From the NCBI RefSeq assembly GCF_963921235.1, contig NC_086108.1, forward strand, positions 50,220,001-50,284,000: DNA of 64,000 bases, written 5' to 3'. Source of the DNA: Mobula hypostoma (taxonomy: Eukaryota). The notes under the pieces were generated by a model. It did not search any database. It saw only the letters and a list, made by a program, of their open reading frames with translations, and was not told the origin of the DNA. Positions within the stretch are counted from its first letter, which is position 1, and every line of letters begins with the position of its first letter. This document shows positions 3,401 to 37,473 of this stretch, one piece after another. The position numbers and the translations under genes are program-made.

Positions 3401-3429
3401 CGGGGTATGGAGCGAATGCTGGGTTCTGA
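415..3429 (+). CDS. CR1 ORF2: AP-like endonuclease plus reverse transcriptase, intact
   Basis: EN motifs NARS, ITETW, GDFN, SDH. RT motifs KSPGPDG, YRPVSL, LDFQKAFDKV, GVPQGSVLGP, FADD. The frame is open from 409. The track start at 430 is TTG, and the first in-frame ATG is at 1033. Confidence 0.95.
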   Translation, partial: FKLEWLGGGNQIKAARCEEVSSQQRDGNQCRETEGCKVSVEAKSTKGKSKSGRPTNPGQALKRAKRVVKERLKALCVNARSIRNKVDELKVKIVINDYDIVGITETWLQGDQGWELNVQGYSIFRRDRHEGRGGGVALLVKKEINAIERKDISREDVESIWVELRNTKGQKTLLGVVYRPPNSSSEVRDGIKQEIRNVCNKGTAVIMGDFNLHVDWVNQIGKGAEEEDFLECMRDGFLNQHVEEPTREQAILDWVLSNEEGLISDLVVRGPLGKSDHNMVEFFINMESDVVNSETKVLNLKRGNFEGMRHELAKIDWQMTLQGLTVDMQWQAFKGCMDELQQLFTPVWQKNKSRKVVHPWLTREIRDSINSKEVAYKLARESGSPEDWEKFRVQQRRTKGLIRKGKKDYERKLAENIKTDCKSFYRYVKRKRLIKTNVGPLQTETGELIMGSKDMADQLNNYFGSVFTKEDINNLPEIVRDRGSSEMEELSEIHVSREVVLGKLKELKADKSPGPDGLHPRVLKEVAQEIVDALVIIFQNSLDSGLVPEDWRVANVTPLFKKGGREKPGNYRPVSLTSVVGKLLESVIKDVITAHLESGEMIGQSQHGFVKGKSCLTNLIEFFEDVTSRVDRGEPVDVVYLDFQKAFDKVPHRRLVCKLKAHGIGGKVLVWVENWLADRKQRVGINGTFSEWQAVTSGVPQGSVLGPQLFTIYINDLDEGIKCSISKFADDTKLGGSVSSEEDAKRMQGDLDRLGEWANSWQMQFNVDKCEVIHFGGKNRKTDYYLNGGRLGKGEVQRDLGVIIHQSLKVGMQVQQAVKKANGMLAFIARGFEYRSREVLLQLYKALVRPHLEYCVQFWSPNLRKDILAIEGVQRRFTRLIPGMAGLSYEERLDELGLYSLEFRRLRGDLIETYKILKGLDRLDAGRLFPMLGRSRTRGHSLRIEGKPFRTEVRKNFFTQRVVNLWNSLPQQTVEASSLAMFKRKLDMALVATGVTGYGANAGF

Positions 3430-3528: not shown

Positions 3529-3675
3529 TAAAACTTCTCAGATTCTTTTCCCCCCGTCTTCTACTAAGATTTACAGTGTTGACATAATTATGTAATATTT
3601 TGGCTTATTTTTAACGATTAGATAAAACAGTACAAAATCTCTCTGGTTGGCCCTGCAGAGTGACCACTCACCCAC

Positions 3676-3849
3676 CTTCTCAGCCTCGTTCAACTGGCCC
3701 AGTAAGAGGTGCAGGGAGCCGATGTTGAAGCAGATTTTGGAGCTGGGCTCCCGAATCGCAGCGAGAGTATCCAGCGCCGTTATCCATTCTTGTTGGTCCG
3801 CTGCCGTGATCGCCTCATCCCACAGCCGTATGGTGTCGGTCAAAGACAT
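3676..3849 (-). CDS. NCF2: Neutrophil cytosol factor 2 (p67phox), first coding exon (58 aa, TPR region); gene continues left of the window
   Basis: MSLTDTIRLWDEAITAADQQEW...SKICFNIG...EAEK matches the p67phox N-terminus (human MSLVEAISLWNEG...SRICFNIG...EAEK). Phase-0 donor AAG|GTGGGT at 3675. Neighbouring ARPC5 in the same orientation matches human synteny. Confidence 0.9.
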
Positions 3850-4430
3850 GCTGGTCTCCGGGTCTACGAGCGGGGGCTGCGATGTGTGAAACCGCGTGTC
3901 CTACACCGGTTCCTGACACCGCCGCGTCTGCCCAGTTTCTTCGAACGAAGCGTTGCAAATCAACTTCAAACGCAAGACTGACTTCTGGGCCAATTTCACA
4001 GGAAATCAGAGCACTGACTTTGCCACTTGACTCAGCTGACCAGCATGAATAGGCAAGAGCGCTAAAAGTATCTGCTGGACTTCACCCGCACACCGTTCGA
4101 AACATTTAAACATTGCAATAATGTGGATGAGGGGAAGTGAAAAAGACGTGGGCGATTTAACAGGGCCAATTCCAACCCCTCCCTACGCATTTTCCGTTTG
4201 TTTTGATTTTCCACTTAATAACCAATGCATCCGCTCATTGGATTTCTTCTGCTAATTGTTACCGAGGAGCGAGCCGTGATGCCCTGACGCAGGGCTGTGC
4301 CCCCACCCTGATCGCTCTGCGTTCATGTTTCCCCGGCAACAAAAATACCAACTCTGCCTCCCAGTGCGAGCCGGCTGCAGAAGCCGGAACTACCACAGTT
4401 TGGAACTGGGGCAGACGCTGCTGAGATTTG
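3850..4430. promoter_or_regulatory. Putative bidirectional promoter between NCF2 and the NmrA-like gene
   Basis: CpG-enriched unique DNA. ARE cores TGACTTTGC (4015-4023) and TGACTCAGC (4028-4036, contains AP-1). ETS-IRF composite GGAAGTGAAA (4133-4142). CCAAT boxes near 3990, 4166, 4222 and 4237 (reverse). Confidence 0.55.
4250..4430 (+). other. Putative non-coding first exon of the NmrA-like gene (5' end uncertain)
   Basis: Consensus donor TTG|GTGAGT at 4430/4431 downstream of the CCAAT boxes. The ATG exon at 9035 begins with a splice acceptor, so an upstream exon is required. Confidence 0.45.
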
Positions 4431-4550
4431 GTGAGTTCTTTGAGGGACGTGCCTCATTTCACGTCCACGCCGTGGATTGCGTTGTCCTGCAACACACATC
4501 AAAGTTGCTGGTGAACGCAGCAGGCCAAGCAGCATCTATAGGAAGAAGTG

Positions 4551-4588
4551 CAGTCGACGTTTCAGGCCGAGACCCTTCGTCAGGACTA
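4551..4588 (-). ncRNA. Minimal type I hammerhead ribozyme motif in Penelope pLTR (intact core)
   Basis: UAGUC CUGACGA AGG-gucucgg-CCU GAAA C GUC GACUG: stem I UAGUC/GACUG, 3-bp stem II, loopless palindromic ACGU stem III. Confidence 0.75.
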
Positions 4589-7040
4589 ACTGAAGGAAGA
4601 GTGAGTAAGGGATTTGAAAGTTGGAGGGGGAGGGGGAGATCCAAAATGATAGGAGAAGACAGGAGGGGGAGGGATGGAGCCAAGAGCTGGACAGGTGATT
4701 GGCAAAAGGGATACGAGAGGATCATGGGACAGGAGGTCCGGGAAGAAAAGCGGGGGGGGGGGGGACCCAGAGGATGGGCAAGGGGTATATTCAGAGGGAC
4801 AGAGGGAGAAAAAGGAGAGTGAGAGAAAGAATGTGTGCATAAAAATAAGTAACAGATGGGGTACGAGGGGGAGGTGGGGCATTAGCGGAAGTTAGAGAAG
4901 TTGATGTTCATGCCATCAGGTTGGAGGCTACCCAGACGGAATATAAGGTGTTGTTCCTCCAACCTGAGTGTGGCTTCATCTTTACAGTAGAGGAGGCCGT
5001 GGATAGACATGTCAGAATGGGAATGCGATGTGGAATTAAAATGTGTGGCCACTGGGAGATCCTGCTTTCTCTGGCGGACAGAGCGTAGGTGTTCAGCAAA
5101 GCGGTCTCCCACTCTGTGTCGGGTCTCGCCAATATATAGAAGGCCACATCGGGAGCACCAGACGCAGTATATCGCCCCAGCCGACTCACAGGTGAAGTGT
5201 TGCCTCACCTGGAAGGACTGTTTGGGGCCCTGAATGGTGGTAAGGGAGGAAGTGTAAGGGCATGTGTAGCACTTGTTCCGCTTACACGGATAAGTGCCAG
5301 GAGGGAGATCAGTGGGGAGGGATGGGGGGGACGAATGGACAAGGGAGTCGCGTAGGGAGCGATCCCTGCGGAATGTAGAGGGGGGGAGGGAAAGATGTGC
5401 TTAGTGGTGGGATCCCGTTGGAGGTGGCGGAAGTTACGGAGAATAATATGTTGGACCCGGAGGCTGGTGGGGTGGTAGGTGAGGACCAGAGGAACCCTAT
5501 TCCTAGTGGGGTGGCGGGAGGATGGAGTGAGAGCAGATGTACATGAAATGGGGGAGATGCGTTTAAGAGCAGAGTTGATAGTGGAGGAAGGGAAGCCCCT
5601 TTCTTTAAAAAGGGAAGACATCTCCCTCGTCCTAGAATGAAAAGCCTCATCCTGAGAGCAGATGCGGCGGAGACGGAGGAATTGCGAGAAGGGGATGGCG
5701 TTCTTGGAAGAGACAGGGTGAGGAGAGGAATAGTCCAGATAGCTGTGAGAGTCAGTAGGCTTATAGTAGACATCAGTGGATAAGCTCCAGAGACAGAAAG
5801 ATCTAGAAAGGGGAGGGAGGTGTCGGAAATGGACCAGGTAAACTTGAGGGCAGGGTGAAAGTTGGAGGCAAAGTTAATAAAGTCAATGAGCTCTGCATGC
5901 ATGCAGGAAGCAGCACCAATGCAGTCGTCGATGTAGCAAAGGAAAAGCGGGGGACAGATACCAGAATAGGCACGGAACATAGATTGTTCCACAAAGCCAA
6001 CAAAAAGGCAGACATAGCTAGGACCCATACGGGTGCCCATAGCTACACCTTTAGTTTGGAGGAAGTGGGAGGAGCCAAAGGAGTAAGGACTATTAAGAGT
6101 AAGGACTAATTCCGCTAGACGGAGCAGAGTGGTGGTAGCGGGGAACTGATTAGGTCTGGAATCCAAAAAGAAGCGTAGAGCTTTGAGACCTTCCTGATGG
6201 GGGATGGAAGTATATAGGGACTGGACATCCATGGTGAAAATAAAGTGGTGGGGGCCAGGGAACTTAAAATCATTGAAAAGTTTAAGAGCGTGAGAAGTGT
6301 CACGAACATATGTAGGAAGGGATTGAACAAGGGGGGATAAAACCGTGTCGAGGTATGCAGAAACGAGTTCGGTGGGGCAGGAGCAAGCTGAGACAATAGG
6401 TCGGCCAGGACAAGCAGGTTTGTGGATCTTGGGTAGGAGGTAGAAACGGGAAGTGCGAGGTGTGGGAACTATAAGGTTGGTAGCAGTGGATGGGAGATCC
6501 CCTGAGCGGATAAAGTCGGTGATGGTGTGGGAGACAATGGCCTGGTGCTCCTTAGTGGGGTCACAATCGAGGGGTAAATAAGAGGAGGTATCCGCAAGTT
6601 GTCGCTGTGCCTCGGCAAGGTAGAGGTCAGTACGCCAGTCTACAACAGCACCCCCCTTATCGGCGGGTTTAATAATAAGGTTAGGATTAGTGCGGAGGGA
6701 GTGGAGAGCAGAGCGTTCCGAAGAAGTGAGGTTGGAATGGGGACAAGGTGCAGTGAAGTCGAGACGGTTGATGTCCCATTGGCAGTTAGCAATAAAGAGA
6801 TCCAGAGCAGGCAGAAGACCAGAGCGGGGTGTCCATGAAGAAGAGGAGGGTTGAAGACGGGAGACGGGGTCATTGGTGTCTTTCTTCCCGGTCCTCCTGT
6901 CCCATGATCCTCTCATACCCCTTTTGCCTATCACCTGTCCAGCTCTTGGCTCCATCGCTCCCCCTCCTGTCTTCTCCTATCATTTTGGATCTCCCCCTCC
7001 CCCTCCCACTTTCAAATCCCTTACTCACTCTTCCTTCAGT

Positions 7041-7078
7041 TAGTCCTGACGAAGGGTCTCGGCCTGAAACGTCAACTG
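7041..7078 (+). ncRNA. Minimal hammerhead ribozyme motif in the inverted pLTR (stem I mismatch)
   Basis: TAGTCCTGACGAAGGGTCTCGGCCTGAAACGTCAACTG, with G>A at 7074 relative to the left copy. Confidence 0.65.
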
Positions 7079-9037
7079 CACCTCTTCCTACAGATGCTGC
7101 CTGGCCTGCTGCATTCACCAGCAACTTTGATGTGTGTTGCTTGAATTTCCAGCATCTGCAGAATTCCTGTTGTTTGCGTTGTCCTGCCCCCGTTTGGTCA
7201 CTTGCTTGGTTCAGTGTTTCCAAGTGACAGGTCAAACATTCTGATAGTCCACTTCATTGTACCTCAGGTGGAAAAGGGGCGATGGGTGGGAAGGAAATTG
7301 TTTTCTCCCATAACAGTCAACATATTGTCAATGAAGTTGCTCTTTGGCTCATGGTCTGGGTCCTATGATCTCAAGCTTTCCAGGTTTGATCGAAGAATTC
7401 ATTAATTAATGAGGATCACTAAAGTTCCTAGGTGGACTCCCAATTTACTACAAAAGGGTTTGCTTCCTGGGTCCAGGAACCTGTGGGTGACAACCATCCC
7501 AAGGGCCAAGGTGTGGGCCCAATCCTTATTTTCTCTCTGTCGAAGATGAAGAGGGAAAGGAGAGCAGGAGCAGGTTTTGGGAGGAAAAGGCTGAGATTTG
7601 GAGCTGGCAGAGCTGGGGGCTGAGGAAAGAGCAAGAGAGGCCCCTCCATTGGTTGGGATTGATCATGGCTCTCGCATTCCACCTGTCTTCGTGATACGCA
7701 GACCAGGGCAGTACGAAATGGAGAGCAAGTTACTGCCAATGTAGCAGGTTCCTCCTCACTTTGCATCCGATTAAATCCAAAGGTATGGCAGAGACCAGCA
7801 GCATTTCAGGAGTTGCCAGTCAGCACTGAACTTAACGTAAGACTGCCTTAGGGACTCCATCTCCAGATTCCTCTTCAGGGTTTACTCCTTCCCCAAGGCA
7901 GCGGAGGTTTGAGATCAGACTTTTCCTTGTCTACCACAAAAGTGATTGATTTTAAGGCGCCAGTAACCCGCCTTTGCCCTCTCCTGTCTGTAGAAATGGG
8001 TCCGCTGGGCTTAGTGGTTGAAATGAAAGCCAGGAGCTGGATTTGGTTGTCAGAGGCTATCTGAGAAGCAAACCATTGGGAGCATTTAATAGGTACTGTA
8101 GTGGGAGCTTATCCCACTACCACGCTCACCTGTAACAACCTTAAGGAACCAAAGATGAAGAGAAAGAAGGTGGAAAGAGCCAATGAGCTGCTGCTGAGGA
8201 AAGGAGAGGGAAAATAAGTTCAAAGTGCAGGGGGAAAATGGTGGGAGGAGAGAGACAGACAATAACCTGACAGCAAGAGAATGGGACGGAAGTCCTCCAG
8301 CACAGAACTGGGGAAGGCAAAGAAAAGACAGCATGGTGAAGGTGTGATGGCGAGGGGAGGAAGCTGGTGAGCAGACGGGGGAAGAGGGGGGAATGAAAGA
8401 CAAAGACTGAATAGGAAGAGTTCAAGAGTGGCACAAGACATTCATTAATGCAGGGGTCACAGAGAGACGTCCAAGTCTGGGGTGGGTAAATGAAAGCACG
8501 CAAATTGCAACCAATATACGGCCATGCTTGACGGTTTGCACACCCAGCACCCAGTGTGTCCACTGTGCAGCGTCCATCAGTACAGTCAGTGAAGGAAGCC
8601 AAACTGATCAGCCACTGTCCCTCATGAACATTGCCCCAGCCGTCTCCTTGCTCAGTAAAATGCTCACCCAACTCTCTCTTAAGGACATTTACCATCTGAG
8701 AAGGAAAGAATTTTACTAATTCACAGTTCCACAATCCCCATCTTCATCCTTGGGTCAGGTCTGGTCATTTTAAGCTCCATCTCTGTGCTCAACAGCACAA
8801 ATCCAAAGCCCATTTCCATCTCAGGCAGCCAGCTCCCAGTTACCACACTCCAAGATAGCAGCTGCAGAATTTTATCTGTACTCTGAAACATATATTTGAA
8901 AAAAATTACAACGATAAGTAATTTTGGTGAAAATATTTAAAATGAATTGCAGAACATTTTTGTGATTTTCTCTACAGTTAACAACTGGACGAATTGAAGT
9001 TCCCCAGCTAAACCTTTGAAACCTTCCTTTGCAGAGA

Positions 9038-9301
9038 ATGACAGAGACTGTGACTGTTTTTGGTGCTGACAGGCAGCAGGGGAATGCTGTTGCCACTGCC
9101 TTGCTGGAGGATGGTGGTTTCATTGTGCGTGCAGTAGTGCGAGAGTTAACCTCTCCCACAGCTCAGCTACTCCAGGCAGATGGGGCACACATCACACTGG
9201 CTGACGCTAATGACCCAGCGAGTGTGGACTCTGCTCTGCTTGGTGCACAGAAGTGCTTCGCGGTCACGCACACTGACTTTAACAACAGGGATCCGCTGCA
9301 G
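9038..9301 (+). CDS. NmrA-like family (HSCARG/NMRAL1-like) protein, coding exon 1 (aa 1-88)
   Basis: VTVFGADRQQGNAVATALLEDGGFIVRAVVR resembles NMRAL1 [31 protein letters not shown]. Acceptor ccttcctttgcAG at 9033-9034, Kozak A at -3, donor CAG|GTTGGT. Confidence 0.9.
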
Positions 9302-10188
9302 GTTGGTTAGACTGTCGTTCACTGTGAAACACCCAAACACAGCGCAAGTTCCATTGTTTTAGTCAGGACCACAGCCTAGACAATCTTATTAATGAGATGT
9401 TCTCATTTTCTAATCTAATGAATATACAAAAGGAGGTAAAGGAAGAATTATTAATGAGTACAGTATCCTTTCTGTAGTGAAGAGTCAGGCATGACATCCA
9501 TTACCGGGACATTAGAGGGACATTCACATCTTGGTGTCAGTACAGGGAACAACTATGTGATAATTCCTTGAGTCCTGGGGTAGTGGTGAAGAAGCATGGG
9601 GAAACCCTGGCCTTCAAAACAGACCGGGAATTATTAGTTTTGGAGATCTTAAAGTTAGCAAGTGGAGTTGAAAGAAAGAGGTGAAAGAACAAAACAATCA
9701 AAGTTATCTTTGACTAAAATCCAGAGATGACAGAGTGGGTAGTGAAGGCAGTGCTCCGAACAGCTAGGACAGGAAAGGAATTTGGGAAAGAGTTACTTGT
9801 TCATTGATCCAGCTGCCAATCCCATAACTGAGTCAGTAAATGACCACATATACAAGCACATCAGCTGCCCTATATACACCTCCCCTCTTAAGTGAACTAA
9901 CCATTTTGGAACATAAAGTCCATGTTCTTCATGAGTTTAAGAAAGTTTATAGGTGCCAGATATTGTCACAGAATGTAAAAGCACCGGGGTTACTGGTGAC
10001 TCTAGCAATTTTACCACGTCCCATATCACCTTTCCATTTGGGTAGAATCTGTATCCCAGGTGCTCCCATGCAACTGGGATGATGAGGTAGAATCCTCTGA
10101 AGCAAACAAAAGCAGTCTGTGTCATTGAATGTCTACTATTTGGAAACAGTCATACTTTCTTACCAAAAGCCCTTCCATCTTTCCACAG

Positions 10189-10444
10189 GATGAAATTCAG
10201 CAGGGATACAGGATGGCTGACGCATGCAAAAAGCACAACATCGGGCATATTGTTCTGAGTGGGGCCCATCACGTCCACAGGAAGTACAGCCTCCCGGCCA
10301 GGCACATGGATGCAAAAGCCTGCATTAATGATTACATGAATGAAATAAATTTGCCCAAGACTGAGATAATAGTTCCATTTTACTTTGAACATTTTCTGAC
10401 AAAATTTAAACCAAAGCCAGTTGGAAATAACACTTATAAAATTG
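10189..10444 (+). CDS. NmrA-like protein, coding exon 2
   Basis: ttccacAG|DEIQQGYRMADAC...HIVLSG...ARHMDAK...PFYFEHFL...KI G|GTAAGG (phase 1). Aligns to NMRAL1 EVKQGKLLAD...YVVYSG...AHFDGK...PCYFENLL. Confidence 0.9.
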
Positions 10445-10664
10445 GTAAGGAATGAAATTTAACTTTAGTGAATTGTTATTAGAATAAACTCTTCTATTTA
10501 CTATAATCTTCAAGGAAGGCAATTCCAAAGAGTTCATGATGTATCCCTCAACACATCATTAATAGCCACGCTACAGTGAGTTGTAACCGTATGCAGTGGG
10601 CAACTGATAGCAAGGAGGCGAATTTATTTTTGATCTAGTTGCCTATATTTTGGGACATGCTGTG

Positions 10665-11805
10665 ATACGGGAGATCATGGAGTGAGTTGGAGACAGTTCC
10701 TTGCAGACCTGACACACCATTTGTAAAAAGCGAGCGGAGCCTGTCAGGACTTCTCTATGGAGCAGGAAGTTGCATAGTGAGTGGAGACAGTTCCTGGTGG
10801 AAATAAGGTGCCAGTTTAAAAAGGTGAGCAAAGCCTGTTGGGACTTGTCTGCCAAGCGGGAGATTGTTTGGGTTAATAGTAACTTAGCGAGGGCCAATAA
10901 AAAGAGGAGAAGTTTAAGTGGAGCAGCCGTTACATGAGTGGACAGTGGTAGAGTGAGCAGGCTTTAGCTCAACAGGCTTCAGCGAGAACAGGTGCAGGCT
11001 AGAACTTAAATTTGAGAAGTTAGAGGTATAGCAAGTGTAGTCAGGATAGTAGTTCAGGCAGTAGAATGCTCCTCCTGTAAGTTGTGAGATTTCAGGATAC
11101 CTAACAGTCACCCTGATGACTACATCTGCAGGAAATGCACCCAACTTCAGCTCTGGACTAACGAGGTCAAAAACTGGAGCTGAAGTTGGATGCACTCAGG
11201 ACCATCTGGGAAGCTGAAAACTTCTTAGATAAGACATTTGCTGAGGTGGTCACACCCAGCAAGCAGACTTCAGATGGTGGCTGAGTGACCACCAGGAGAG
11301 GTAAGGGGAGAAGCAGTCACTGTAGGGTACTCCATAGCCATTCATTGAAACCCATTGAATATTGAAAGGCCCAGATAGAGTAGATGTGGAAAAGATGTTT
11401 CTATAGTGGATGAGTCTAGGACAAGAGGGCACAACCTCAAAGTAGAGCAGAGTTTCCCAACCTGGAGTCCATGGACCCCTTGCTTAATGGTATTGGTCCA
11501 TGGCATAAAAAAGGTTGGGAATCTCTGGGAATAGAGGGACATCCATTTAAAACAAAGATGAGAAGAAATATCTTTAGGCAGAGAGTGGAGAATCTAGGGA
11601 ATTCATAGCCACATATGGCTGTGGAAGCCAACTCATTGAACATATTTAAAGCAGAAGCTGATAGATTCTTGGTTAGTCAGGGAGTCAAAGGTTACGGGGA
11701 GAAGGCAGGAGAAAGGTGTTGAGAGGGATAATATATCAGCCACGATGGAATGGCAGAGCAGACTTGATGGGCCAAGTGACCTAATTCTACTCCTCTGTCT
11801 TATAT
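10665..11805 (+). mobile_element. Internally deleted CR1: 5' UTR and ORF1 zinc-finger N-terminus joined to the ORF2 3' end and 3' UTR
   Basis: AVECSSC...DYICRKCTQLQL at ~11058-11153. An abrupt junction near 11343 leads into IET..ILKG.DRVD-type ORF2 end and CR1 3' UTR. Confidence 0.7.
11448..11527. mobile_element. ~80-bp hAT-like MITE; other copies at 12890-12967, ~45781-45858 and 54858-54936
   Basis: TIRs of the type CAGGGGTTCCCAACC...GGTTGGGAACCCCTG, a shared internal sequence, and degenerate 8-bp flanking repeats (ATTTAAAT/ATTGAAAT at 54850 and 54937). Confidence 0.7.
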
Positions 11806-12979
11806 TTCAGCTAGCCACCCATAGGAGCTGCAAGAAAGCTCAAATATGCCCCACTGAAAAGGGGAGAGGTTGGGAAAAAGAATCAGGTGGTAGGGGGAAG
11901 TGACACAACCTTACCATTACAGGGGTCATGTACCAACTTTGAGCACTTCAGACGTGGGAGAAGGTCGTCAGAAATTGCTCTTGGCTTCAGAAGTTCATGA
12001 AAATCACCTTTTAAACCCTTTCAGCTGGACAGGGAAAAGGGTTATTTAAGATTACAGTAGGATCTAGATGAACCTGTATCTCCAATTTCGGTGATTTATA
12101 CGCTTGTTCTCTGAGGTCCTTCTATTATACTGTACAACAGTCTCCACTGCCCTGTCATTTACTGCGCAAGTCCTCTGCACTGTCCAGAATATGTGAATTT
12201 GTAAGTTTTTAAGCTGGTCCAGTAAGTGGCACTTACCATTTGGACTGTTGTGATGATCAGCCAACTGGACATTGAGGCACTAACTGGTGCCAGCCTGTGG
12301 ACAATGGCTCAATGTGATTGGGAAATCAGACTAGACTGTTCACTATTTCAGAATCTGATGGTTTGCTTCATGCACTGAAGGCCCAAACCAAAATTGTTCA
12401 TCTCGGTAACCGGTACAGTCAGTCAGCTGGATTGCCAGGTGCTATAGCTTTCTCCAGCAGTAGATGTTTCAATGATTGGTATTTCTGTCATGGGTTTGAG
12501 GGCAAGGAATAACTTAGCAAGTGTAATTAGGGCAGACGAGTTGCGAAGAACTTGCTGTAGTTTTAAATAGTAGCAGCACCCTGGCCTCTGACGATCACTG
12601 CCAAAAATCATTGAGGGAAGACTCCAGATGTCAGAATGCAATCAATCCAAAGCTGAAGTGAACAGAGCAATGTCCAGTGAGATCAGCACCACCAGGATGT
12701 GATCTTCTGGGTCACGCTCTCCCTGACTGACTAGGCAGATGTAAAAGTCCTGAAGAAATCCATCAGTATCCAGATCAACATTTATCCTGCAGCCATTTGA
12801 TTCCAATAAGTCTATCAGTAGCTAGAAGTGTCTGTCCTTCGGATGTTCCAAACCATTACTTCTGCATTCAGAAACAGAGCCCTCAATAGCAGGATCCCCA
12901 ACCTTTTTTATATCACGGATCATTAGCACTAACAAGAAGTCCAGGGATCCCAAGTTGGGAACCCCTGTTCTACAGTTTC

Positions 12980-13470
12980 CTCTGGTAGCTCATTCAATCT
13001 TCCCACCACCCTCTGTTGGAAAAGTTTGCCCCTCCGGTCCCCTTTGAATTCTTTCCCCTCTCATCTTAAACCCATGCCCTCTAGTTTTAGATTCCCCTAC
13101 CCTAGGAAAAAGACTATGACCAGTCACCTTATCTATGTTCTTCATTTTTAAATATATATAAGGTCACTCCTTAGCTTTCTGTTTTCCATGGGGGAAGAAA
13201 ATCATAGTCTATCTAGCCTCTGCTTATAACTTAATCACTCCTGTCCCAGTAACATCTTTGTGAATCATTTCTGTACCCTTTCCAGCTTAATGACATCCTT
13301 CCTATAGCTGGGCATTCAGACTGCATGCAATACAGCAAATGTGGTCTCACCTGCATCTTGTAATATGACATCCCAAATCTTGTACTCATTGCCCTGACTG
13401 ATGGAAGTAAGGATGCCAAACATGTTCTTCACAATTCTCTCTACCCCTGACATCACTTTCAGAGAACTAT
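12980..13470 (-). mobile_element. Degraded CR1 ORF2 3' fragment
   Basis: YKMQVRPHLLYCMQ remnant of the YKxLVRPHLEYC motif. Confidence 0.65.
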
Positions 13471-13474
13471 ATAA

Positions 13475-14470
13475 CAATGAGTCCTAGTACACAAAGAAGT
13501 TAGAGAGCTTAGTGGCATGGTGTCGACAACAACCTTTCCCTCAATATCAGCAAGACATTGACTATAGGAAGGGGCAGTGCACATGCTCCTGTTTACAATA
13601 CTGGGCTACAGAAGATTAAGAGCTTTGTTCCTAAAAATGAACATCACCTGTAGTCATCTTCTCATCTTTTTATCCAGTCCTGATGAAGGGTCTCGGTCAA
13701 AATGTCGACTCTTTACACTTTTCCACAGATGAGACTGGCCTGCTGAGTTCCTCCAGTAGTTTGTGCGTATTACTTTGATTTCCAGCATCTGCAGATTTTC
13801 TCTTGTTTGTGATCACCGGTAGTTCTGGTCCAACCACGCAGTAGATCAACTCAGCAGTGCCCATGGTTCCTCAGGAGACTAAAGAAATTTGGCACGACCC
13901 CTTTGACTATTACTAATTTTTATCAATGCACCATAGAAAACATTCTGTTTGGATGCTTTACAGCTTATACGGCAACTGCTCTGCCAGAGACCACAAGAAC
14001 CTACGTAGAATTGTGGACACAGCTCAGCACATCACAGAAACTAGCCTTCCCTCCATGGACTCTATCCGCGCTTCTCACTGCCTTGGTAAAGCAGCCCACA
14101 CAATCAAAGACCCCTCCCACCCCAGGCATTCTCTCTTATCCCCCCTTCCATCATGATGTAGAGACTAAAGCTTGAAAGCAATTACCACTATGTTCAAGGA
14201 CAGCTTCTATGCTGCTGGTATAAGGCTATTGAATTGTCCCCAGGTATGGACTCGATCTCACAATCTAACTCATTATGGCCTTGTAACTTACTGTCTGCCT
14301 GTGCTGTATTTTCTCTGAAACTGTACACTTTATTCTGCACTGTGGTCTCGCTTTCCCTTGTACTACCTCAATACACTCTTGTAATGAAATGAACTGTCTG
14401 GATGGCATGCAGAGCAAAGATTATCACTATACCTTGTACATATGACAGCAATGAATCAATTTACCTATTC
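13475..14470 (+). mobile_element. Degraded Rex1/Babar-type LINE 3' fragment, interrupted by a Penelope pLTR at 13655-13811
   Basis: NFYQCTIENIL and YGNCSARDHKNLRRIVDTAQHIT motifs. The pLTR is flanked by ATCACC(T/G)GTAGT at 13643-13654 and 13812-13823. Confidence 0.7.
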
Positions 14471-14477
14471 AAATTGC

Positions 14478-17400
14478 TATTCTTTGACCCACTTCCCAAG
14501 TTGATCTATATCCTGTTGTAATTGTAGATAACTCTCTTCACTGTCCACTATGCCACCAGTTTTGTTATCCACAAACTTACTAACATTGTCATCGACTTTT
14601 TCATTCAAATCATTAATAGATGACAAACAATAGTGGACACAGCACCTATCCCTGCAGGACACCACTGGTCACAGGTCTCCACTCTGAAAAACAACCCTCC
14701 ACTACCACACTCTGCCTGTTACCACTGGTCAGTTCTGAATCCAGTTGATTAGTTCAGTATGGACCTCAAGTGATCTAATCTGCAGGACCTTCTCAAAGGC
14801 CTTGCTAAAGACAACATTGACTGCCCTACTCTTATCATTTCTCTTGATCAGTTTAGTCATAAAGTCATAGAAAAGTACAGTACAAAAATAGGTCCTTCAG
14901 CCCATTTAGTCTTTACCAAGCCTTTTAAACTGCCTACTCCCATCGACTTGCACCAGGACCATAGTCGTCCATACCCCTACCATTCATGTATCTATCCAGA
15001 CTTCTTTTAAGTGTTGAAATTGAGTTCACATGATCCACTTGTGCTGGCAGCACATTACGTACTCTCATGACACGCTGAATGAAGAAGTTTCACCTCATGT
15101 TCCCCTTAAACTTTTCACCTTTCACCCTTAAACCATGACCTCTGGTTGTAATCCCACCCAACCTCAGTGGAAAAAGCCTGCTTGCATTTACCCTGTCTAT
15201 ACTCCTCATAATGTTGTACACCTCTATCAAGTCTCCTCCCAATCTTCTATGTTCCAAGGAATAAAGTCCTAACCTATTCAATTTTTCCGTATAACTCAGG
15301 TCCTCCAGAACCAGCAACACCGTTGTAAGTATTCTCTGTATTCTTTCAAACTTATTTACATCTTTCCCGTAGGTAGGTGACTAAAACTGCACAGAATGCT
15401 CCAAATTAGCCCTCACCAACGTGATATACAATTTCAACGTAACATCCCATCTCCTGTACTCAGTACTTTGGTTTATGAAGGCCAATGTGCCAAAGGTTTT
15501 CTTTATGACCCTATCAACCATTGATGACACTTCCATTGAATTATGGACCTGTATTCCCAGATCTCTTTGTTCTACCACACTCCTGAAGGCCCTACCATTC
15601 ACTGTGTAAGACCAACTCTGGACGGTCCTACGGAATTGCAGCACCTTGCACTTGTCTGCATTAAAAAAAAACTCCGTCAAGTCTGTGAGATTGATTTCCC
15701 ACATTCAAGTTGTGCTTACTGGCAGCCATCAAGTCTACTAATTACTTTACTAATCGCACTTTTTCTCGGAAACGGTCACTGCAATCAGTAGCCAGTAACT
15801 TCCCTTTTGGAGTTGAGCTTTAGAACCACCTGTACGACTTGGCATTTTTGCGTTGCGAACTGAAGTCTTGAAGATACAGGATGGTTGCGGCATGGCGAAT
15901 ACGTACCAAATTGAGGCAGGGCCCTGGCTCAAGAGCGTGGAATGAGCCAATGTTTGGCCATTGCGGGAGCAGACTTTGAATCGATTTTAACCGGTAGAAC
16001 CAAGGTGAGGCGAGAGCAAGAAATGACCCACAGTTTGGCTGATTTAAGCGCCTGGCCAGTTTGAAAAGCTCAGGGTGTTGGGGTTGGAGAAGGGGGATGA
16101 GCTGGTGTTCAGCTGGCTGCTCACAAGCTTTACTGGTCTCTGCATTGAACTGAGGCTGTGGCCTGCAACTAACAGGCTCCTGGATTGACTGTGACTGCGT
16201 GTGGACTCACTTCCGTGAACTTCAGTTCTGAATGTTATTTGCTTACTTTTATTGTTTGTACAATTTGATATTTTTCTCCACATTGGGTGTTTGGCAGTCT
16301 CTTTTAAATAGCTTCTATTCGGTTTCTTTGTATTGTGACTGGCTGTAAGGTGACAAATCTCAGGGTTGTATATAGTATAAATACTTTGATAATAAATGTA
16401 CTTTGAATGTTGCTGACTATCTCTAATCATCCCTTGCCTTTCCAAATGCTGCTAGATCCTATCCTTTAAAATACCCTCCAGTAACATTTCCTCTAATGAT
16501 CTTTGACTCATCAGCCTGTAGTTTCTTGGCTTGTAGCCTTGTAGTCTTTGTAAAATAAAGGCACGACATTCCCCCCTCCAGTCTTCCCCTGCATTACCTA
16601 CGATGCAATGAAAATATGCAAATATTTCTGCTAGAAACCTTGTAATTTCTTCCCTGGTTTCCTATAATATCCTGGGGTGCACTTGGTGAGGTACAGGAGA
16701 TCCATCCAATTTAATATGCTATGAGTGCAAATCAATAAGCATTTCCTCTTTTATAGTATGGCTATGTTCCAAGATATCACTGTTCATTTCCCGTATTTGT
16801 GTAGCTTGCAGGACCTTCTCCATAGTAAACACAGATGAGAAATTGTTTTGAGACCTCACCTATCTTCTGTGGCACCACACATAGATACACACATTGATCT
16901 TTAATAGAACCTATTCTCTCCGTTTTATTCTTCATATATTTGCTAAAGAAAGAAAGTTTAACCTTTTCAGAGTATGAAGCAAAAATAAATGTAAATGAGT
17001 TTTAACATTAAGCTAATGGTTAAATTTAGAATCAGTATTGTTACAAACTTTTTATTGGCTTAACAAGTGTTGAATTCTTTCCAGAGATGGAAATATTCCA
17101 GTGTCTTATTTCTTTGGTTTTAGACCTTGTATGTTCTTTTCAGCCATTCCAATGGGAGAGGTTGCCATGGATGGAATGAGCATCAAACAGATTGGTCCAA
17201 TCGTGACAGTTTTATTTAAAAACCCGGAGCGCTGGATGGGGAAGAGCTGCTTTCTATCTGCAGGCAGGCTGACAGTCCCGGAATATGCACAAATCCTGAC
17301 TCATCACCTGCGTCCCAAACAGTTTAAAGATTCCCGGGTATGCTTTATCAAGAAATCAAGTGCCATGATACTAAAAACAGAAAATGCTGGATACACTTAA

Positions 17401-19650
17401 CAGTTATTTCCTCAGCAAGATCTTAAATGAATATTTCTCATTTGTGTTTACTGTGATAACTATTCATGACAATATCCATGGTGGGAAAAGCAGTTAATGT
17501 TTCAGCTCCAGGCAGGGTTCTAATGCAAAGTCCTGGGCCAGAAACAGTAACTTGTTCTTTCCACAGATTTTCAGAATCTGCAGTTTATTTTCATTTACTA
17601 TGGTTATCATGCAGGATAAAAACAACGTGACATTACTGTGGTTGAGGCGTAGGACACACTGACATTTTACCCAGGAACATTAATGGGAAGAGTAGAGTGA
17701 AGATTTACAAGGGGAAACAAATAGTCGAATATTTTGGTTCAGTCTTCGTGGAAGAGGGTAAAATGCGAGACAATTAAGAGTGTGATGAAAATGAGGAATT
17801 AAGGGAAAATTATATAAATACAATAAATTACTGGAGAAATTAATGGGACTAAAAGCTGTTAAAATCCTGAAAGCTGATCATCTGAATACAGCCTACCAAA
17901 AGAAGTGGCTGTGGAAATAATGGATGCTCCCTTTAGAACATAGATGAGTAGAATACAGCACAGGAACAGGCCATTGCGCCCACAAACTTGTGCCAAATCA
18001 GCTAAAAAAAAACAAATCAAAAACACCCAAACACTAATCCGTCCTACCTACACCATGTCCATATCCCTCCATCTTCCCTATACCCATGTGCCTATCCAAA
18101 TGTCTCTTAAAAGATTCTAATGTATTTGCCTCTACCACCACACCAGACAGCATATACCAGGCATCTACCACTCTCTGAGTAAAAAACTTAGCCCTCACAT
18201 CTCCCTTGAACCCACCTCCCTCACCTTCAATGCATTCCCTCTGGTATTAGACATTCAACCCTGGGAAATAGATACTCTCTGTCCATTCTAAGTATGCCTT
18301 TCATAATCTTGTAAACCTCTATCAGGTCTCCCCTCAGCCCCTGATGCTCCAGAGAAAATACCCTAATTTTACCCAGCCTCTCATGATAGCACATGTTCTC
18401 TAAACCAGGCAGCATCCTGGTGAACCTTTTCTGCATTCTCTCCAAAGCCTCAACATCCTTCCTGTAGTGGGGCGACCAGAATTGTATGCAATACTCAAGA
18501 TGTGGCTTCACCAGAGTTTTATAAAGTTGTAACATAACCTCCTGACTTTGAACTCCATGCCTTTTCTAATAAAAAGCAAGCATTCCATAAGCCTTCTTAA
18601 CCACCTTATCGACCTGTGTAGCCACTTTTAAGGAGTTACGAACTTGGATCCTAAGATTTCTCTGTTAAGGACCTTGCCCTTATCAGTGTACTGACTTCTT
18701 GCATTTGCCCTACTGAGGTGCAACACCTCACATTTATCTGGGTTAAATGCCAGCTACCATGTCTCAGCCCACATCTGCAACTGGTCTATATCATTCTGTA
18801 TTCTTTGCCAGTCTTCTATGCTATCCACAACTCCACCAATCTTGGTATCATCTGCATATTTACTAATCCACCCATCTACATTTTCATTCAGATCATTTAT
18901 ATGCATTACAAACAGCAGAGGTCCCAGCATCGGTCCCCATGTAGCTCCACTAATTGCAGATCTCCAGCTCAAAGAAGTCCCTTCAACCACTACCCTCTGT
19001 CTTCTATTGACAAGCCAGTTCTGAATCCCAACAGCCAATTCGCTGCGGATCCCATGCACCTTAATCTTCTGGATTAGCCTCCCAGGAGCACTTTGTCAAA
19101 CACCTTACTATAATCCACGTAGACAACATCCACTGCCCTAACCTCATCGATCTCTCTTGTCACCTTGTCAAAAAAACTCAATCAAATTGGTAAGGCGTGA
19201 CCTGCCATGCACAAAGCCATGCTGGCTCTCCCTAATTAGGCCGTGGGTTTCTAAATGCTCATATATCCTATCTCTAAGAATTCTCTTCATCAATTTCCCT
19301 ACAGCTGATGTGAGACTCACTGGTCTATAGTTCCCTGGATTTCCCCTTGTTTCCTGTTTAAATAGAGGTACAACATTAGCCACTCACCAGTTTTCCGGGA
19401 CGGGCCCAGCCATCTTGTCTCTAGCCTCCTTCAATAACCTGGGGTCTTAAGTACCTTAGTACTCCTTAGGACACCCAACATTTCCTCCTCCTTGACCTCT
19501 AAATGCCCTGATATATTTATACCCTCAGCACTGATCTCCTGGTCCTCCATATCATTTTCCTTGGTAAATACTGAAGCAAAGTCCACACTAAGTACCTCAC
19601 TCACATTCTCTGCATCCAAGCAAATTTTACCTCCTTTATCCTTGAGTGGT
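14478..19650 (-). mobile_element. Cluster of degraded CR1 fragments in NmrA-like introns (about 14478-15670, 16420-16930 and 17935-19650)
   Basis: ORF remnants SKFVDNKTGG, LGLYSLEHRRLGGDLIEVY, YKTLVKPHLEYC, SKYADDTKIGG, GNYRPVSLTS. The span also contains exon 17144-17337 and an unclassified repeat at ~15730-16410. Confidence 0.75.
17144..17337 (+). CDS. NmrA-like protein, coding exon 3
   Basis: ttttcAG|CC completes Ala (phase 1). IPMGEVAMDGMSIKQIGPIV...EYAQIL...DSR|GTATGC resembles NMRAL1 [20 protein letters not shown]...EYAALL. Confidence 0.9.
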
Positions 19651-20604
19651 TAAGGAACCTAAATAAGGTAAATGAAATTCTCCTCCACAGTGTTTACAAA
19701 GCCTTCACAAAGATATATTTAGAAAAAACTTCACATAATCTCATGCAAGTCACAGGCAGGCAACTATTCACAATATGACCTGATTCAGTGAACAAGATCA
19801 CATTGAACCTGACTGCCAACATTTTGGTTGGTGCTCACTCACTTCCTCATCCAAAATGACCGTCTCTGGAAATAGAGGGCCAAGTAAGGAGGGCATGTCA
19901 TTCACTGAGCTCCACCCTGGAGTATCTGACACCTATGATGGTTCACTATTCTGAGCAATTTTGAATTTTTAAAATCTGTGACATTCAGAGCCATTACAAA
20001 ATGTTCAAGTCAGATAAAAGAATTAAAAATAAGCATTAAACACAAAAATGCGCTGTAAAATACCCATTTCTTCAGGATTGATGGCTGCACTTGTTTGAAG
20101 AGCATCTATCCCTTTATTCTTTGATGCACAATCCTCCTCCAGTCTTCTCCCTCATTAATGATACTGTGAGCATTATTGTCTTGATCTTTATAATTCTAGT
20201 TAGTGCACTTCCTTATTCTTGCCCTCTGTTTAAATGTCATGATTGATCTCATCACCTACATTGAGATTTAAACAGATTTCCCTTCCTTTTGAAACCTGCA
20301 AATTCATGAACCCTGACCATGCAGTGTCATTCCCCTCACTGTGCAGTTTTTCATCCATGCCATTTTAAACCTTGGCCTTTAAACCGATGCTGGGAATATC
20401 CCTATGAAACAAGATATCTCAGATATTATCTAGTTTTCTGATTGAAACATCTCCTGGTACATTAAAGGCCAATAAAGATAAATCCTCCCAGCTCATAATA
20501 CTATTCAATATTCCTGAATTACATTTGTGCTGTTAAGTACTGCCTGAAATCAGGACAACATTATTGTAATGATCAGAATGATGCTTTCACTTTTATTGCG
20601 ACAG

Positions 20605-20787
20605 ATTTCTGTCCGAGAGTTTGTGGAGTCCTATGGAAGACCGGGGGCTCAAGACTTTGGGAACATGTTTGAATTTTGGAAGAGAGGTGGACAGAAAATG
20701 AACAGCACTATGAGTTTTGAACTCTATCCGGAGTTACAAACGTTCCAGCAGTGGGTTTCAGCCAACACCATTTCACTGGACAGTTAA
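20605..20787 (+). CDS. NmrA-like protein, last coding exon (total CDS 897 nt, 298 aa)
   Basis: acAG|ISVREF...PGAQDFGNMFEFW...YPELQTFQQWV...stop resembles NMRAL1 PGARDLANMFRFY...NPKALTLDQWL. Exon phases are consistent (264+256+194+183). Confidence 0.9.
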   Translation: MSVREFVESYGRPGAQDFGNMFEFWKRGGQKMNSTMSFELYPELQTFQQWVSANTISLDS

Positions 20788-20899
20788 CTGGCAGTACCAA
20801 CAACAGCCAGTCCTGTGGCTGGAACAAAATGCATGTTTCTGAAATGTTTCCAAAGACATGATGTGGGTCTTCAGTAAACTTGTATACCAAATACTCAAA

Positions 20900-20905
20900 A
20901 ATAAA
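20900..20905 (+). terminator. Candidate polyadenylation signal of the NmrA-like gene
   Basis: AATAAA 113 nt after the stop, followed by T-rich sequence. An ATTAAA also occurs at 20938. Confidence 0.55.
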
Positions 20906-21149: not shown

Positions 21150-23520
21150 ACATACACAAGATGCTGGAGGAACTCAGCAGGCCAGGCAGCGTCTGTCACA
21201 TCTGCTCTTAGGATGAGGCTTTTCATTCCAGAACTAATGAGATGTCCTCCTTCTTCCAAGAAAGGGGCTTTCCTTCCTCCAACATCAACTCTGCACTCAA
21301 CCATATCTCTTCCATTTTGCGTCCATCTGCCCTCACCCTCATCCTCCCATCACCCCACCAAGGATAGGGTTCCTCTCGTCCTCACCTACCACCTCACTAG
21401 CTTCTGTGTCGAGTACATAATTCTTCATAACTTCTGCCATCTCCAATGGGATCCAACCACCAAGCACACCTTTCACTCCCCCTCCCCCCCATTTACTGCT
21501 TTCCACGGATATCGCTCCCTACTCGACTTCCTTGTCCATTCGTCCTTCCCCACTGATCTCCCTCCTGGTGCTTATTTTGTAAGTGGAACAAGTGCCACAC
21601 CTGCCCCTACACCTCCTCCCTTACTACCATTCAGGGCTCCAAACAGTCATTCCAGATGAGGCGACACTTCACCTGTAAATCTGTTGGGCTATCTATTCTA
21701 TCTGGTCTCCTGTATATCAGTGAGACCTGACGTAGATTTGAGACTGCTTCGCCAAGCACCTATACTCCATCTGCCAGAAAAAGCAGGATTTCCTGGTGGC
21801 AACACACATAAAAGTTGCTGGTGAACGCAGCAGGCCAGGCAGCATCTCTAGGAAGAGGTACGGTCGACGTTTCAGGCCGAGACCCTCCGTCAGGACTGCA
21901 GATTTCCTCGTGTTCAGTGACTGAAACTTATTTCATCTGATGCTCTATCAAATGTACTATTTGAGGGGGAGGGGGAGATCCAAAATGATAGGAGAAGACA
22001 GGAGGGGGAGGGATGGAGCCAAGAGCTGGACAGTTGATTGGCAAAAGAGATATGAGAGGATCATGGGACAGGAGGCCTAGGGAGAAAGAAAAGGGGGTGG
22101 GGAAGCCCAGAGGATGGGCAAGGGGTATAGTGAGAGGGACAGAGGGAGAAAAAGGAGAGAGAGAAAAGGAATGTGTGTATATAAATAAATAAATAATGGA
22201 TGGGGTACGAGGGGGTGGTAGGGCATTAGCAGAAGTTTGAGAAGTCAATGTTCATGCCATCAGGTTGGAGGCTACCCAGACGGAATATAAGGTGTTGTTC
22301 CTCCAACCTGAGTGTGGCTTCATCTTTACAGTAGAGGCGGCCGTGGATAGACATGTCAGAACGGGAATGGGATGTGGAATTAAAATGTGTGGCCACCGGG
22401 AGATCCTGCTTTCTCTGGTGGACAGAGCGTAGGTGTTCAGCGAAACAATCTCCCAGTCTGCGTCGGGTCTCGCCAATATATAGAAGGCCGCATCGGGAGC
22501 ACCGGACGCAGTATATCACCCCAGCCGACTCACAGGTGAAGTGTCGCCTCACCTGGAAGGACTGTCTGGGGCCCCGAATGGTGGTGAGGGAGGAAGTATA
22601 AGGGCATGTGTAGCACTTGTTCTGCTTACAAGGATAAGTGCCAGGAGGGAGATTGGTGGGGATGGATGGGGGGATGAATGGACAAGGGAGTCGCGTAGGG
22701 AGCGATCCCTGCGGAAAGCAGGGGGGGGATAGGGAAAGATGTGCTTAGTGGTGGGATCCCGTTGGAGGTGGCGGAAGTTACGGAGAATTATATGTTGGAC
22801 CCGGAGGCTGGTGGGGTAGTAGGTGAGGACAAGGGGAACCCTATTCCTAGTGGGTTGGCGGAAGGATGGAGTGAGAGCAGATGTGCGTGAAATGGGGGAG
22901 ATGCATTTGAGAGCAGAGTTGATGGTGGATTCCTGGTGGCAAACCATTTCAATTCTACTTCCCATTCCAACATGTCAATCCAAGGCCTCCACTCCTGTCA
23001 TGATGAGGCCACACTCAGGTTGGAGGAGCAGCACCTTATATTCCATCTGGGTGGCCTCCAACCTAATGGCATGAATATCGATTTCTTGAACATCCAGTAA
23101 TTGTCCGCCCCCTCCTTCACCTTCCCCATTTCCACTCTCCTATCTCACCTTATCTCCTTACCTGACCATCATTTCCCTTGGGTGCTTCTCCCCCTTCCAG
23201 TTCTTCCATAGTCTTTTGTCCTCTCCTATCAGATCCCACCTTCTCTAGCCCTTTATCTCTTTTACCAGTCAACTTCCTAGCTCTTTACTTCACCCCTCCT
23301 CCCCGCCCCCCCCCCGGTTTCATCTATCACCTACCACCTTGTACTTCTTCCTCCCCTCCTCCCACCTTCCTACTCATCTTCTTTTCTTCAGTCCTGGTGA
23401 AGGTTCTCGGCCCCAAACATCGTTTACTCTTTTCCACAGATGCTGTCTGGCCTGCTGCGTTCCTCCAGTATTTTGTGTGTGTTGCTTGGTTTTCCAGCAT
23501 CTGCAGATTTTCTCGTGTTT
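21150..23520 (+). mobile_element. Older Penelope-like element (RT end plus GIY-YIG, degenerate), host of a nested insertion
   Basis: KDRVPLVLTYH motif, short inverted pLTR at ~21151-21195 and 3' pLTR to ~23520. The GIY-YIG region resumes at 22930. Confidence 0.8.
21803..22929 (-). mobile_element. Younger 5'-truncated Penelope nested antisense within the older Penelope
   Basis: GIY-YIG ORF 22226-22552 is very similar to 4882-5208. TSD TTCCTGGTGGCAA at 21790-21802 and 22930-22942. Hammerhead variant at 21861-21898. Confidence 0.85.
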
Positions 23521-37296: not shown

Positions 37297-37473
37297 CTTT
37301 TCATGCCATTGTAGTAATATTGCACTACTATTGTCTGATGGTTTTTCAAAACCTTTGTAGATATACTTCATCAGAAGGTCAATACTATTCTTGTCAAGGG
37401 ACTGAACAGCTTTTTCAATATCATTACTCTTAAATGAAGTCAAAACTTTAACAACTGTATTTTCTGCCCGGTC
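37297..37473 (-). CDS. ARPC5: ARPC5 exon 3 (177 nt)
   Basis: [59 protein letters not shown] with AG/GT boundaries. Confidence 0.95.

Follow-up and report, generated by a model that had tools for sequence, protein, structure and literature searches.

The 64,000-nucleotide stretch of the Mobula hypostoma genome analysed here (the window) contains an intact gene of the NmrA family, which we call the NmrA-like gene. It is transcribed divergently from NCF2, the gene for p67phox, and lies between NCF2 and ARPC5. We think that it is probably a functional gene of an old, unnamed lineage with the NmrA/HSCARG fold that is separate from NMRAL1. Judging from gene order in the species sampled, its head-to-head position beside NCF2, with ARPC5 on the other side, probably goes back to the common ancestor of jawed vertebrates.

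The explanation we favour, and consider probable when taken as a whole, is the following. Transcription of the NmrA-like gene most likely starts in a CpG-rich stretch of 0.6 kb adjoining the NCF2 ATG. A non-coding exon ending at 4430 would then be spliced across a transposon-filled intron to 9035. NCF2 and the NmrA-like gene would have a common bidirectional promoter region, and their 5' ends would overlap or nearly do so. The protein retains the fold of HSCARG and, in the cleft, the side with His-x-Asp-x-Lys. On the stem of its clade it has lost two features, the pyrophosphate loop in its canonical form and the 2'-phosphate arginine. Because of this loss, the protein is probably not an NADPH sensor of the HSCARG kind. 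It may act through its remodelled cleft or through protein contacts.

Gene model and gene order

The 298-amino-acid protein is encoded by four exons on the plus strand, with the coding sequence running from 9038 to 20787:

9035-9301, plus strand: first coding exon, with the ATG at 9038; carries the remodelled loop G-A-D-R-Q-Q-G-N
10189-10444, plus strand: second coding exon, from GT/AG borders and translation
17144-17337, plus strand: third coding exon, from GT/AG borders and translation
20605-20905, plus strand: last coding exon and 3' untranslated region (UTR), with the stop codon at 20785-20787 and AATAAA at 20900-20905

All borders of the coding exons are GT/AG and the phases are consistent. 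The spliced product is exactly the RefSeq protein XP_062920125-28, which carries the name "nmrA-like family domain-containing protein 1 isoform X2". RefSeq has four transcripts for this form, all without the extension found in isoform X1. Thus the gene that the first-pass annotation had described from the letters, an intact 298-residue NmrA-family gene divergent from NCF2 and placed between NCF2 and ARPC5, is exact.

The protein matches the Pfam family NmrA (PF05368, E 6.8e-36, profile positions 1-297/298) and human HSCARG (E 1e-50). In the protein atlas it falls into family-level clusters only. The gene is under purifying selection, with a ratio of nonsynonymous to synonymous substitutions (dN/dS) of 0.15 between Mobula and skates.

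The two neighbours were identified from the following exons:

3676-3849, minus strand: first coding exon of NCF2 (p67phox), with the ATG at 3849 and the donor just below 3676
37297-37443, minus strand: ARPC5 exon (PF04699 P16-Arc, E 9e-19); ARPC5 is the convergent downstream neighbour of the NmrA-like gene

The NCF2 exon encodes p67phox residues 1-58 and matches residues 1-59 of human p67phox, in the TPR domain, with an E value of 4.5e-15. At the same position NCBI has a gene of 496 amino acids with TPR, SH3, PB1 and SH3 matches, whose coding sequence begins at the start of this exon. NOXA1 was considered as the upstream gene. It is ruled out by the SH3 matches on both sides of PB1 and by the p67phox match of exon 1. 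Hence the order of the domains (TPR, SH3, PB1, SH3) identifies the upstream gene as NCF2.

In the window, NCF2 (minus strand) and the NmrA-like gene (plus strand) point away from each other, and the NmrA-like gene and ARPC5 (minus strand) point towards each other. Gene tables around the orthologs show NCF2 on the minus strand upstream of the plus-strand NmrA-like gene in six further species, where NCF2 is about 490-525 amino acids long and has the TPR, SH3, PB1 and SH3 domains. The distances between the two ATGs are:

Lepisosteus: 1.5 kb
Callorhinchus: 2.0 kb
Macrochelys (turtle): 3.5 kb
Carcharodon: 3.6 kb
Amblyraja: 6.8 kb
Erpetoichthys: 8.2 kb

The divergent orientation is found in the window and in all six of these species, from chimaera to turtle. 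ARPC5, on the minus strand, follows the NmrA-like gene in Callorhinchus, Amblyraja and Macrochelys.

Some further features lie near this gene order. In Lepisosteus, the gene 3' of the NmrA-like gene is not ARPC5 but encodes 317 amino acids without a Pfam match; it is followed by an LRR/TIR gene of the Toll-like receptor type (gar locus L002, 17361-22771). In the window, an intact open reading frame (ORF2) of a long interspersed nuclear element, 999 amino acids long and with endonuclease and reverse transcriptase domains, lies inside NCF2 intron 1 (430-3429, plus strand).

A lineage separate from NMRAL1

To place the protein, 1.84 billion cluster representatives were searched with exon 1 as the query, and full-length proteins were ranked by BLAST. 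The two most similar proteins come from Callorhinchus (62% identity) and Latimeria (58%). Amphioxus and invertebrate proteins come next with about 37-41% identity, and tetrapod NMRAL1 has about 36%. A search with the coelacanth protein yields intact orthologs in sharks, rays, skates, chimaera, lungfish, coelacanth, caecilians, salamanders, bichir, paddlefish, bowfin and gar. Teleost orthologs found with this query come from the elopomorph Aldrovandia and, as a partial sequence, from Megalops.

In a maximum-likelihood tree of 56 proteins, the orthologs and the turtle sequences form one clade (support 100/100). This clade groups with proteins from amphioxus and from some molluscs, nemerteans and echinoderms (100/99). 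These are its nearest relatives outside the clade, and some carry the same database name, "nmrA-like family domain-containing protein 1" (e.g. Branchiostoma XP_035695836). The canonical vertebrate NMRAL1/2 proteins form a separate group (94/99). Forcing both vertebrate groups together, a grouping that was named after the tree was seen, costs 36.9 log-likelihood units (approximately unbiased (AU) test, p 0.0005). Furthermore, the salamanders Pleurodeles, Ambystoma and Lissotriton have one gene of each lineage apiece.

The tree, the AU test and the salamanders with both lineages lead us to conclude that the gene is a paralog that predates vertebrates and not a relocated NMRAL1. The earlier proposal of a distinct paralog, as opposed to a translocated NMRAL1, is borne out on each of these lines of evidence.

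Human HSCARG (NMRAL1; PDB 2exx, 2wm3) is similar in length, has the same NmrA-like atypical short-chain dehydrogenase fold and is 33% identical to the Mobula protein. It does not group with the NmrA-like protein, which belongs to a separate clade. The genomic surroundings differ as well: human NMRAL1 adjoins HMOX2, whereas the NmrA-like gene adjoins NCF2. In many genomes, databases give the NmrA-like gene the name of NMRAL1. This name hides an older, separate lineage with a remodelled cofactor loop and a linkage to NCF2 that has held across the jawed vertebrates sampled, from chimaera to turtle. A literature search found no paper on this paralog lineage or on a head-to-head or bidirectional partner of NCF2.

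The distribution of the lineage points to losses. In these word-indexed searches, which give no proof of absence, no mammal, bird or frog is among the matches of the clade, turtles are the only amniotes, and most teleosts are missing. The turtle gene appears to be decaying. In Macrochelys suwanniensis (locus L012, 10001-18022) two stops interrupt the reading frame in the homolog of exon 3, and the protein as annotated has only 186 amino acids. Other turtle predictions have 186-289 amino acids and sit on a long branch.

The first-pass annotation had left open whether the gene was lost or moved in mammals. The sequences favour loss in place for amniotes, because the decaying turtle copy still lies between NCF2 and ARPC5 and turtles are the sole amniotes among the matches. 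Relocation fits less well. The locus would be a clean case of amniote gene loss, with the relic still in place in turtles. Turtles are reported to have lost canonical NMRAL1 too (2026 preprint, 10.64898/2026.03.05.709825). Hence turtles may lack both lineages.

Canonical NMRAL1 of cartilaginous fishes was searched for with a query from Xenopus. Of the 5,895 matches, the best 120 were nearly all from frogs. Many tandem canonical NMRAL1 copies lie on single frog chromosomes: among the matches listed, Eleutherodactylus coqui has at least five, and Dendrobates, Pelobates and Leptodactylus have several each.

The interval between NCF2 and the NmrA-like gene

The acceptor at 9034/9035, a pyrimidine tract followed by CAG, lies 3 nt before the ATG of the NmrA-like gene. 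This position is common to ray, skate, chimaera and gar. An acceptor just 5' of the ATG means that a non-coding upstream exon is to be expected. The features that bear on this exon and its promoter are:

3850-4430, no strand: stretch of 581 bp rich in CpG, which presumably holds a bidirectional promoter shared by both genes and the overlapping 5' UTRs; aligns with the bridging stretch of about 550 nt in skate
3985-4430, plus strand: probably the first, non-coding exon of the NmrA-like gene, with an approximate 5' end; at the 3' end lies the donor G|GTGAGT at 4430
3997-4036, no strand: conserved block of 40 nt, 39/40 identical between Mobula and skate
4111-4131, no strand: conserved block (at least 17/20 ray/skate identity) with a TTGCAAT core that resembles a C/EBP site, the factor being a tentative assignment
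4220-4228, no strand: CCAAT box kept in skate, from the alignment
4489-7140, minus strand: Penelope-like retroelement in intron 1, with RVT_1 and GIY-YIG matches
7409-7510, plus strand: alternative coding 5' exon of RefSeq isoform X1 (333 amino acids), spliced to 9035; donor AAG|GTGTGG at 7510

Transcripts from skates show what this upstream exon looks like in a close relative. Eight Logan contigs encode the skate ortholog, with proteins that differ from Leucoraja erinacea by 1-3 residues. Mapped on the locus of Amblyraja radiata (L003), all eight proved to be spliced cDNAs. In each of them a non-coding exon ending at 9030 (|GTGAGC) is joined to an acceptor that precedes the ATG by 4 nt, followed by the four coding exons, with GT-AG introns.

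Two of the contigs, from different runs (SRR11241671 and SRR13269335), run unbroken into the spliced NCF2 mRNA on the opposite strand. Both mRNAs are present in two skate libraries. In these two contigs, about 550 nt lie between the NCF2 ATG and the donor of exon 1. The contigs span this entire interval, although the RNA is unstranded and the correspondence to Mobula is by alignment only. Since the assemblies are unstranded, the contig ends are not start sites.

The Mobula sequence agrees with the skate structure. The donor at 4430, 581 bp from the NCF2 ATG, aligns together with its flanks with the skate donor at 9030. Positions 3850-4440 align with the skate interval, with an overall identity of 56% (364/655 columns). 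Three skate contigs begin at positions equivalent to Mobula ~3980-3997. Conserved windows, defined as 20 nt with at least 17 identities, lie at 3990-4039, 4107-4133, 4314-4343, 4370-4389 and 4409-4430, and the last one reaches the donor. The block at 4322-4343 is also recognisable in Callorhinchus, where a GGTGAG donor follows about 90 nt beyond it.

From this alignment we conclude that the Mobula exon ending at 4430 and the RNA-verified skate exon are orthologs. The suggestion that a first exon ends about 580 bp from the NCF2 ATG thus gains backing from skate transcripts and from sequence conservation.

The base composition fits a promoter on the NCF2 side. The CpG observed/expected ratio is 0.76-0.96 over 3601-4600 but only about 0.2-0.3 on the 5' side of 9035, in windows that cover 7201-9200, and the CpG-rich stretch is confined to the NCF2 side. 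By pattern match, the best-conserved block (3997-4036) has a GGAA core of the ETS type at 4000 and a TGACnnnGC core at each of 4015 and 4028. The core at 4028, TGACTCAGC, fits both an AP-1 site and a site of the antioxidant response element (ARE) type. Human NCF2 transcription depends on ETS-type and AP-1-type sites. The motif set is compatible with a myeloid promoter of the AP-1/ETS/C-EBP type.

Further motifs occur in Mobula and not in skate: CCAAT boxes at 3990, 4166 and, inverted, 4237. A PU.1/IRF-type composite, GGAAGTGAAA, at 4133 is missing from skate, too, and was not counted as conserved.

Taken together, NCF2 and the NmrA-like gene most likely share a promoter region of at most 0.6 kb. 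For Mobula, the use of exon 1 and the sharing of the promoter would follow from the comparison with skate.

Several observations weigh against this picture of a shared, long-conserved promoter. Low-level transcription upstream of the promoter could bridge the two skate mRNAs without true overlap. Outside batoids, the non-coding sequence is only weakly conserved: there is one marginal block in Callorhinchus (E 0.066), and nothing in the Mobula interval is alignable with gar. At the caecilian locus, no called gene lies within 10 kb of the NmrA-like gene. Finally, the RefSeq alternative exon at 7409 and the four transcripts of the 298-residue form mean that other start sites exist.

The last point leads to an alternative for Mobula itself. 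The exon ending at 4430 could be unused in this species, with transcription starting inside the intron, for example at 7409-7510, so that no promoter is shared with NCF2. RefSeq isoform X1 does use 7409-7510; it consists of a 35-residue N-terminal addition followed by the 298-amino-acid protein. Moreover, the Penelope-like element now puts 2.65 kb between 4430 and 9035. It fills most of intron 1 (4431-9034), starting 59 nt past the exon-1 donor, and has inverted arms of 260 nt (4489-4748 and 6881-7140) that are 96% complementary.

However, the exon at 7409-7510 has no match in the skate locus when the latter is compared with the window, and the region around it is low in CpG. The four RefSeq transcripts of the 298-residue form do without the X1 extension. 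The donor at 4430 and the blocks upstream of it are conserved with the skate exon seen in RNA. Hence we regard an intronic start without promoter sharing as very doubtful and retain the shared promoter region. A fragment of a second Penelope-like copy, 90-94% similar, lies downstream of the NmrA-like gene (22159-23116).

In the Amblyraja radiata reference, a 5.27-kb insertion with a 13-bp direct duplication at its flanks splits the region between NCF2 and the NmrA-like gene (L003, 3214-8505). The skate RNA contigs lack this insertion. Evidently, several kilobases can be inserted between the NCF2 ATG and exon 1 without breaking up the divergent pair. In one skate contig (L005, 1-28), 28 nt of NCF2 exon 2 are fused to exon 1 of the NmrA-like gene without a splice signal at the joint, which is probably a chimera of assembly or template switching.

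Conserved adjacency could also be passive, owing to no more than the difficulty of breaking up a compact divergent promoter, and the role of the NmrA-like gene may have nothing to do with the oxidase. Several lineages that keep NCF2 have no intact gene among the matches: amniotes, with the decaying turtle copy, frogs and most teleosts. This argues that the gene is not needed for oxidase function. A CpG-rich promoter with CCAAT boxes also resembles those of many broadly expressed divergent gene pairs.

On the other side, the arrangement is kept in every examined lineage with a compact enough locus, even after transposon insertions on the kilobase scale, and the ETS-type and AP-1-type cores fall into the best-conserved promoter block. 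We consider passive adjacency a possibility to be taken seriously, albeit not a probable one, and prefer the explanation set out at the beginning.

The cofactor loop and a possible oxidase link

The AlphaFold model of the 298-amino-acid protein has a predicted local distance difference test (pLDDT) score of 96.1. Foldseek superimposes it on HSCARG with bound NADP (PDB 2exx_A) with a template modeling (TM) score of 0.94 and a root-mean-square deviation of 1.7 Å, a two-domain Rossmann-type fold. Within this fold, the loop G-A-D-R-Q-Q-G-N takes the place of the glycine-rich G-x-T-G-x-x-G-G.

The alignment comprised 33 members of the NmrA-like clade and, for comparison, 21 canonical proteins from vertebrates and 9 proteins from invertebrates. 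Four HSCARG positions tell the groups apart:

Thr13: Asp or Glu in 32/33 clade members; kept in 21/21 canonical proteins
Gly14 (the central Gly): lost in 30/33 clade members; kept in 21/21 canonical proteins
Gly18: lost in 32/33 clade members; kept in 21/21 canonical proteins
Arg37: kept in 9/33 clade members; kept in 21/21 canonical proteins

The Mobula protein itself is among those that retain the Arg37 equivalent. Invertebrate proteins keep the four positions in 8-9 of 9 cases, if Ser is allowed for Thr13. The change of the loop therefore arose on the long stem of the jawed-vertebrate clade (0.52 substitutions per site). The same contrast is visible in the motifs. HSCARG has G-A/G-T-G-A-Q-G-G and the amphioxus and invertebrate relatives keep a canonical G-x-T/S-G-x-Q-G-G loop together with Arg37, whereas the clade has G-A-D-x-x-x-G-N and does not conserve Arg37.

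Arg37, Tyr81 and Lys133 are reported to be critical for NADPH binding in HSCARG (PMC4027218). At the Tyr81 position the Mobula protein has Phe, as do 14/21 canonical proteins. Lys133 is kept in 33/33 clade members, and His is found at the HSCARG-129 position in 32/33. His replaces the catalytic Tyr of short-chain dehydrogenases here as it does in HSCARG, where the Lys is likewise kept (H-x-D-x-K). The resulting His-x-x-x-Lys would be of the non-enzymatic regulator type.

We consider canonical NADPH sensing unlikely for this clade, given that it is without the glycine-rich dinucleotide loop and mostly without Arg37. The label of a redox sensor given in the first-pass annotation is weak for the same reason. 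The pattern cautions against transferring an "NADPH sensor" annotation to the proteins of this clade. The protein is under constraint, albeit with a different specialisation.

Two points speak for retained binding. Firstly, nearly all clade members (32-33 of 33) retain Lys133, His129 and Asp131. Secondly, NmrA of Aspergillus nidulans (PDB 1k6x, 1ti7, 2vut), a protein of the same family and fold, also has a non-canonical glycine motif, as the title of PDB 1xgk (N12G/A18G mutant) implies. It still binds NAD+ and NADP+, and PDB entries show both NAD and NADP bound. A degenerate loop is thus no proof of lost binding. Aspergillus NmrA is non-enzymatic and acts by binding AreA. It differs from the NmrA-like protein in sequence, with about 18% identity, and in being a fungal nitrogen-metabolite repressor without a link to an oxidase.

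What could such a protein do beside NCF2? The view of the first-pass annotation was that the protein may be co-expressed with p67phox as a built-in modulator of the respiratory burst. In this view it would be an NADPH sensor of the HSCARG type through which NADPH status acts back on the burst. The fold is indeed that of HSCARG. Lys133, His129 and Asp131 are conserved and Mobula has the equivalent of Arg37. Human HSCARG lowers NADPH oxidase activity via p47phox expression, through NF-kB (PMC3602244), and this work on HSCARG is the one published connection with the oxidase. In addition, the gene stands head-to-head with NCF2 across the full range of jawed vertebrates sampled, and both mRNAs occur in the same skate libraries.

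However, the clade has mostly lost the positions listed above, all four of which the canonical vertebrate proteins keep. Human HSCARG co-precipitates with neither p47phox nor p67phox and leaves the p67phox level unchanged (PMC3602244). A function of this paralog as sensor or modulator would be argued by analogy with HSCARG. We regard this view as unlikely and prefer a protein with the HSCARG fold that probably does not sense NADPH in the manner of HSCARG.

A role of the paralog in the respiratory burst is our hypothesis, drawn from the conserved divergent layout and from the two skate libraries with both mRNAs. In its boldest form, which we put forward with little confidence, the ancestral jawed vertebrate would have had an HSCARG-fold protein without canonical NADPH binding, driven by the p67phox promoter. 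In phagocytes, this protein would have served as a partner or brake, either for the NADPH oxidase or for the signalling that follows from it, and amniotes, frogs and most teleosts would have dispensed with it. In cartilaginous fishes, in ray-finned fishes other than teleosts and in salamanders, the gene is a candidate regulator with a link to the phagocyte oxidase, and one that can be put to the test. It is present in the axolotl, which is a laboratory species.

Between rays and salamanders there is hardly any variation in the stretch that corresponds to HSCARG 113-158 (HHVHR...RHMDAK...PFYFE). HHVHR, where HSCARG has LENVK, is among the conserved changes specific to the clade. Together with the His of RHMDAK it forms a clade-specific cluster of histidines in residues 113-160 of the window protein (exon 10189-10444), the most conserved stretch of 50 residues. 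This cluster could be a metal-binding, ligand-binding or protein-contact site.

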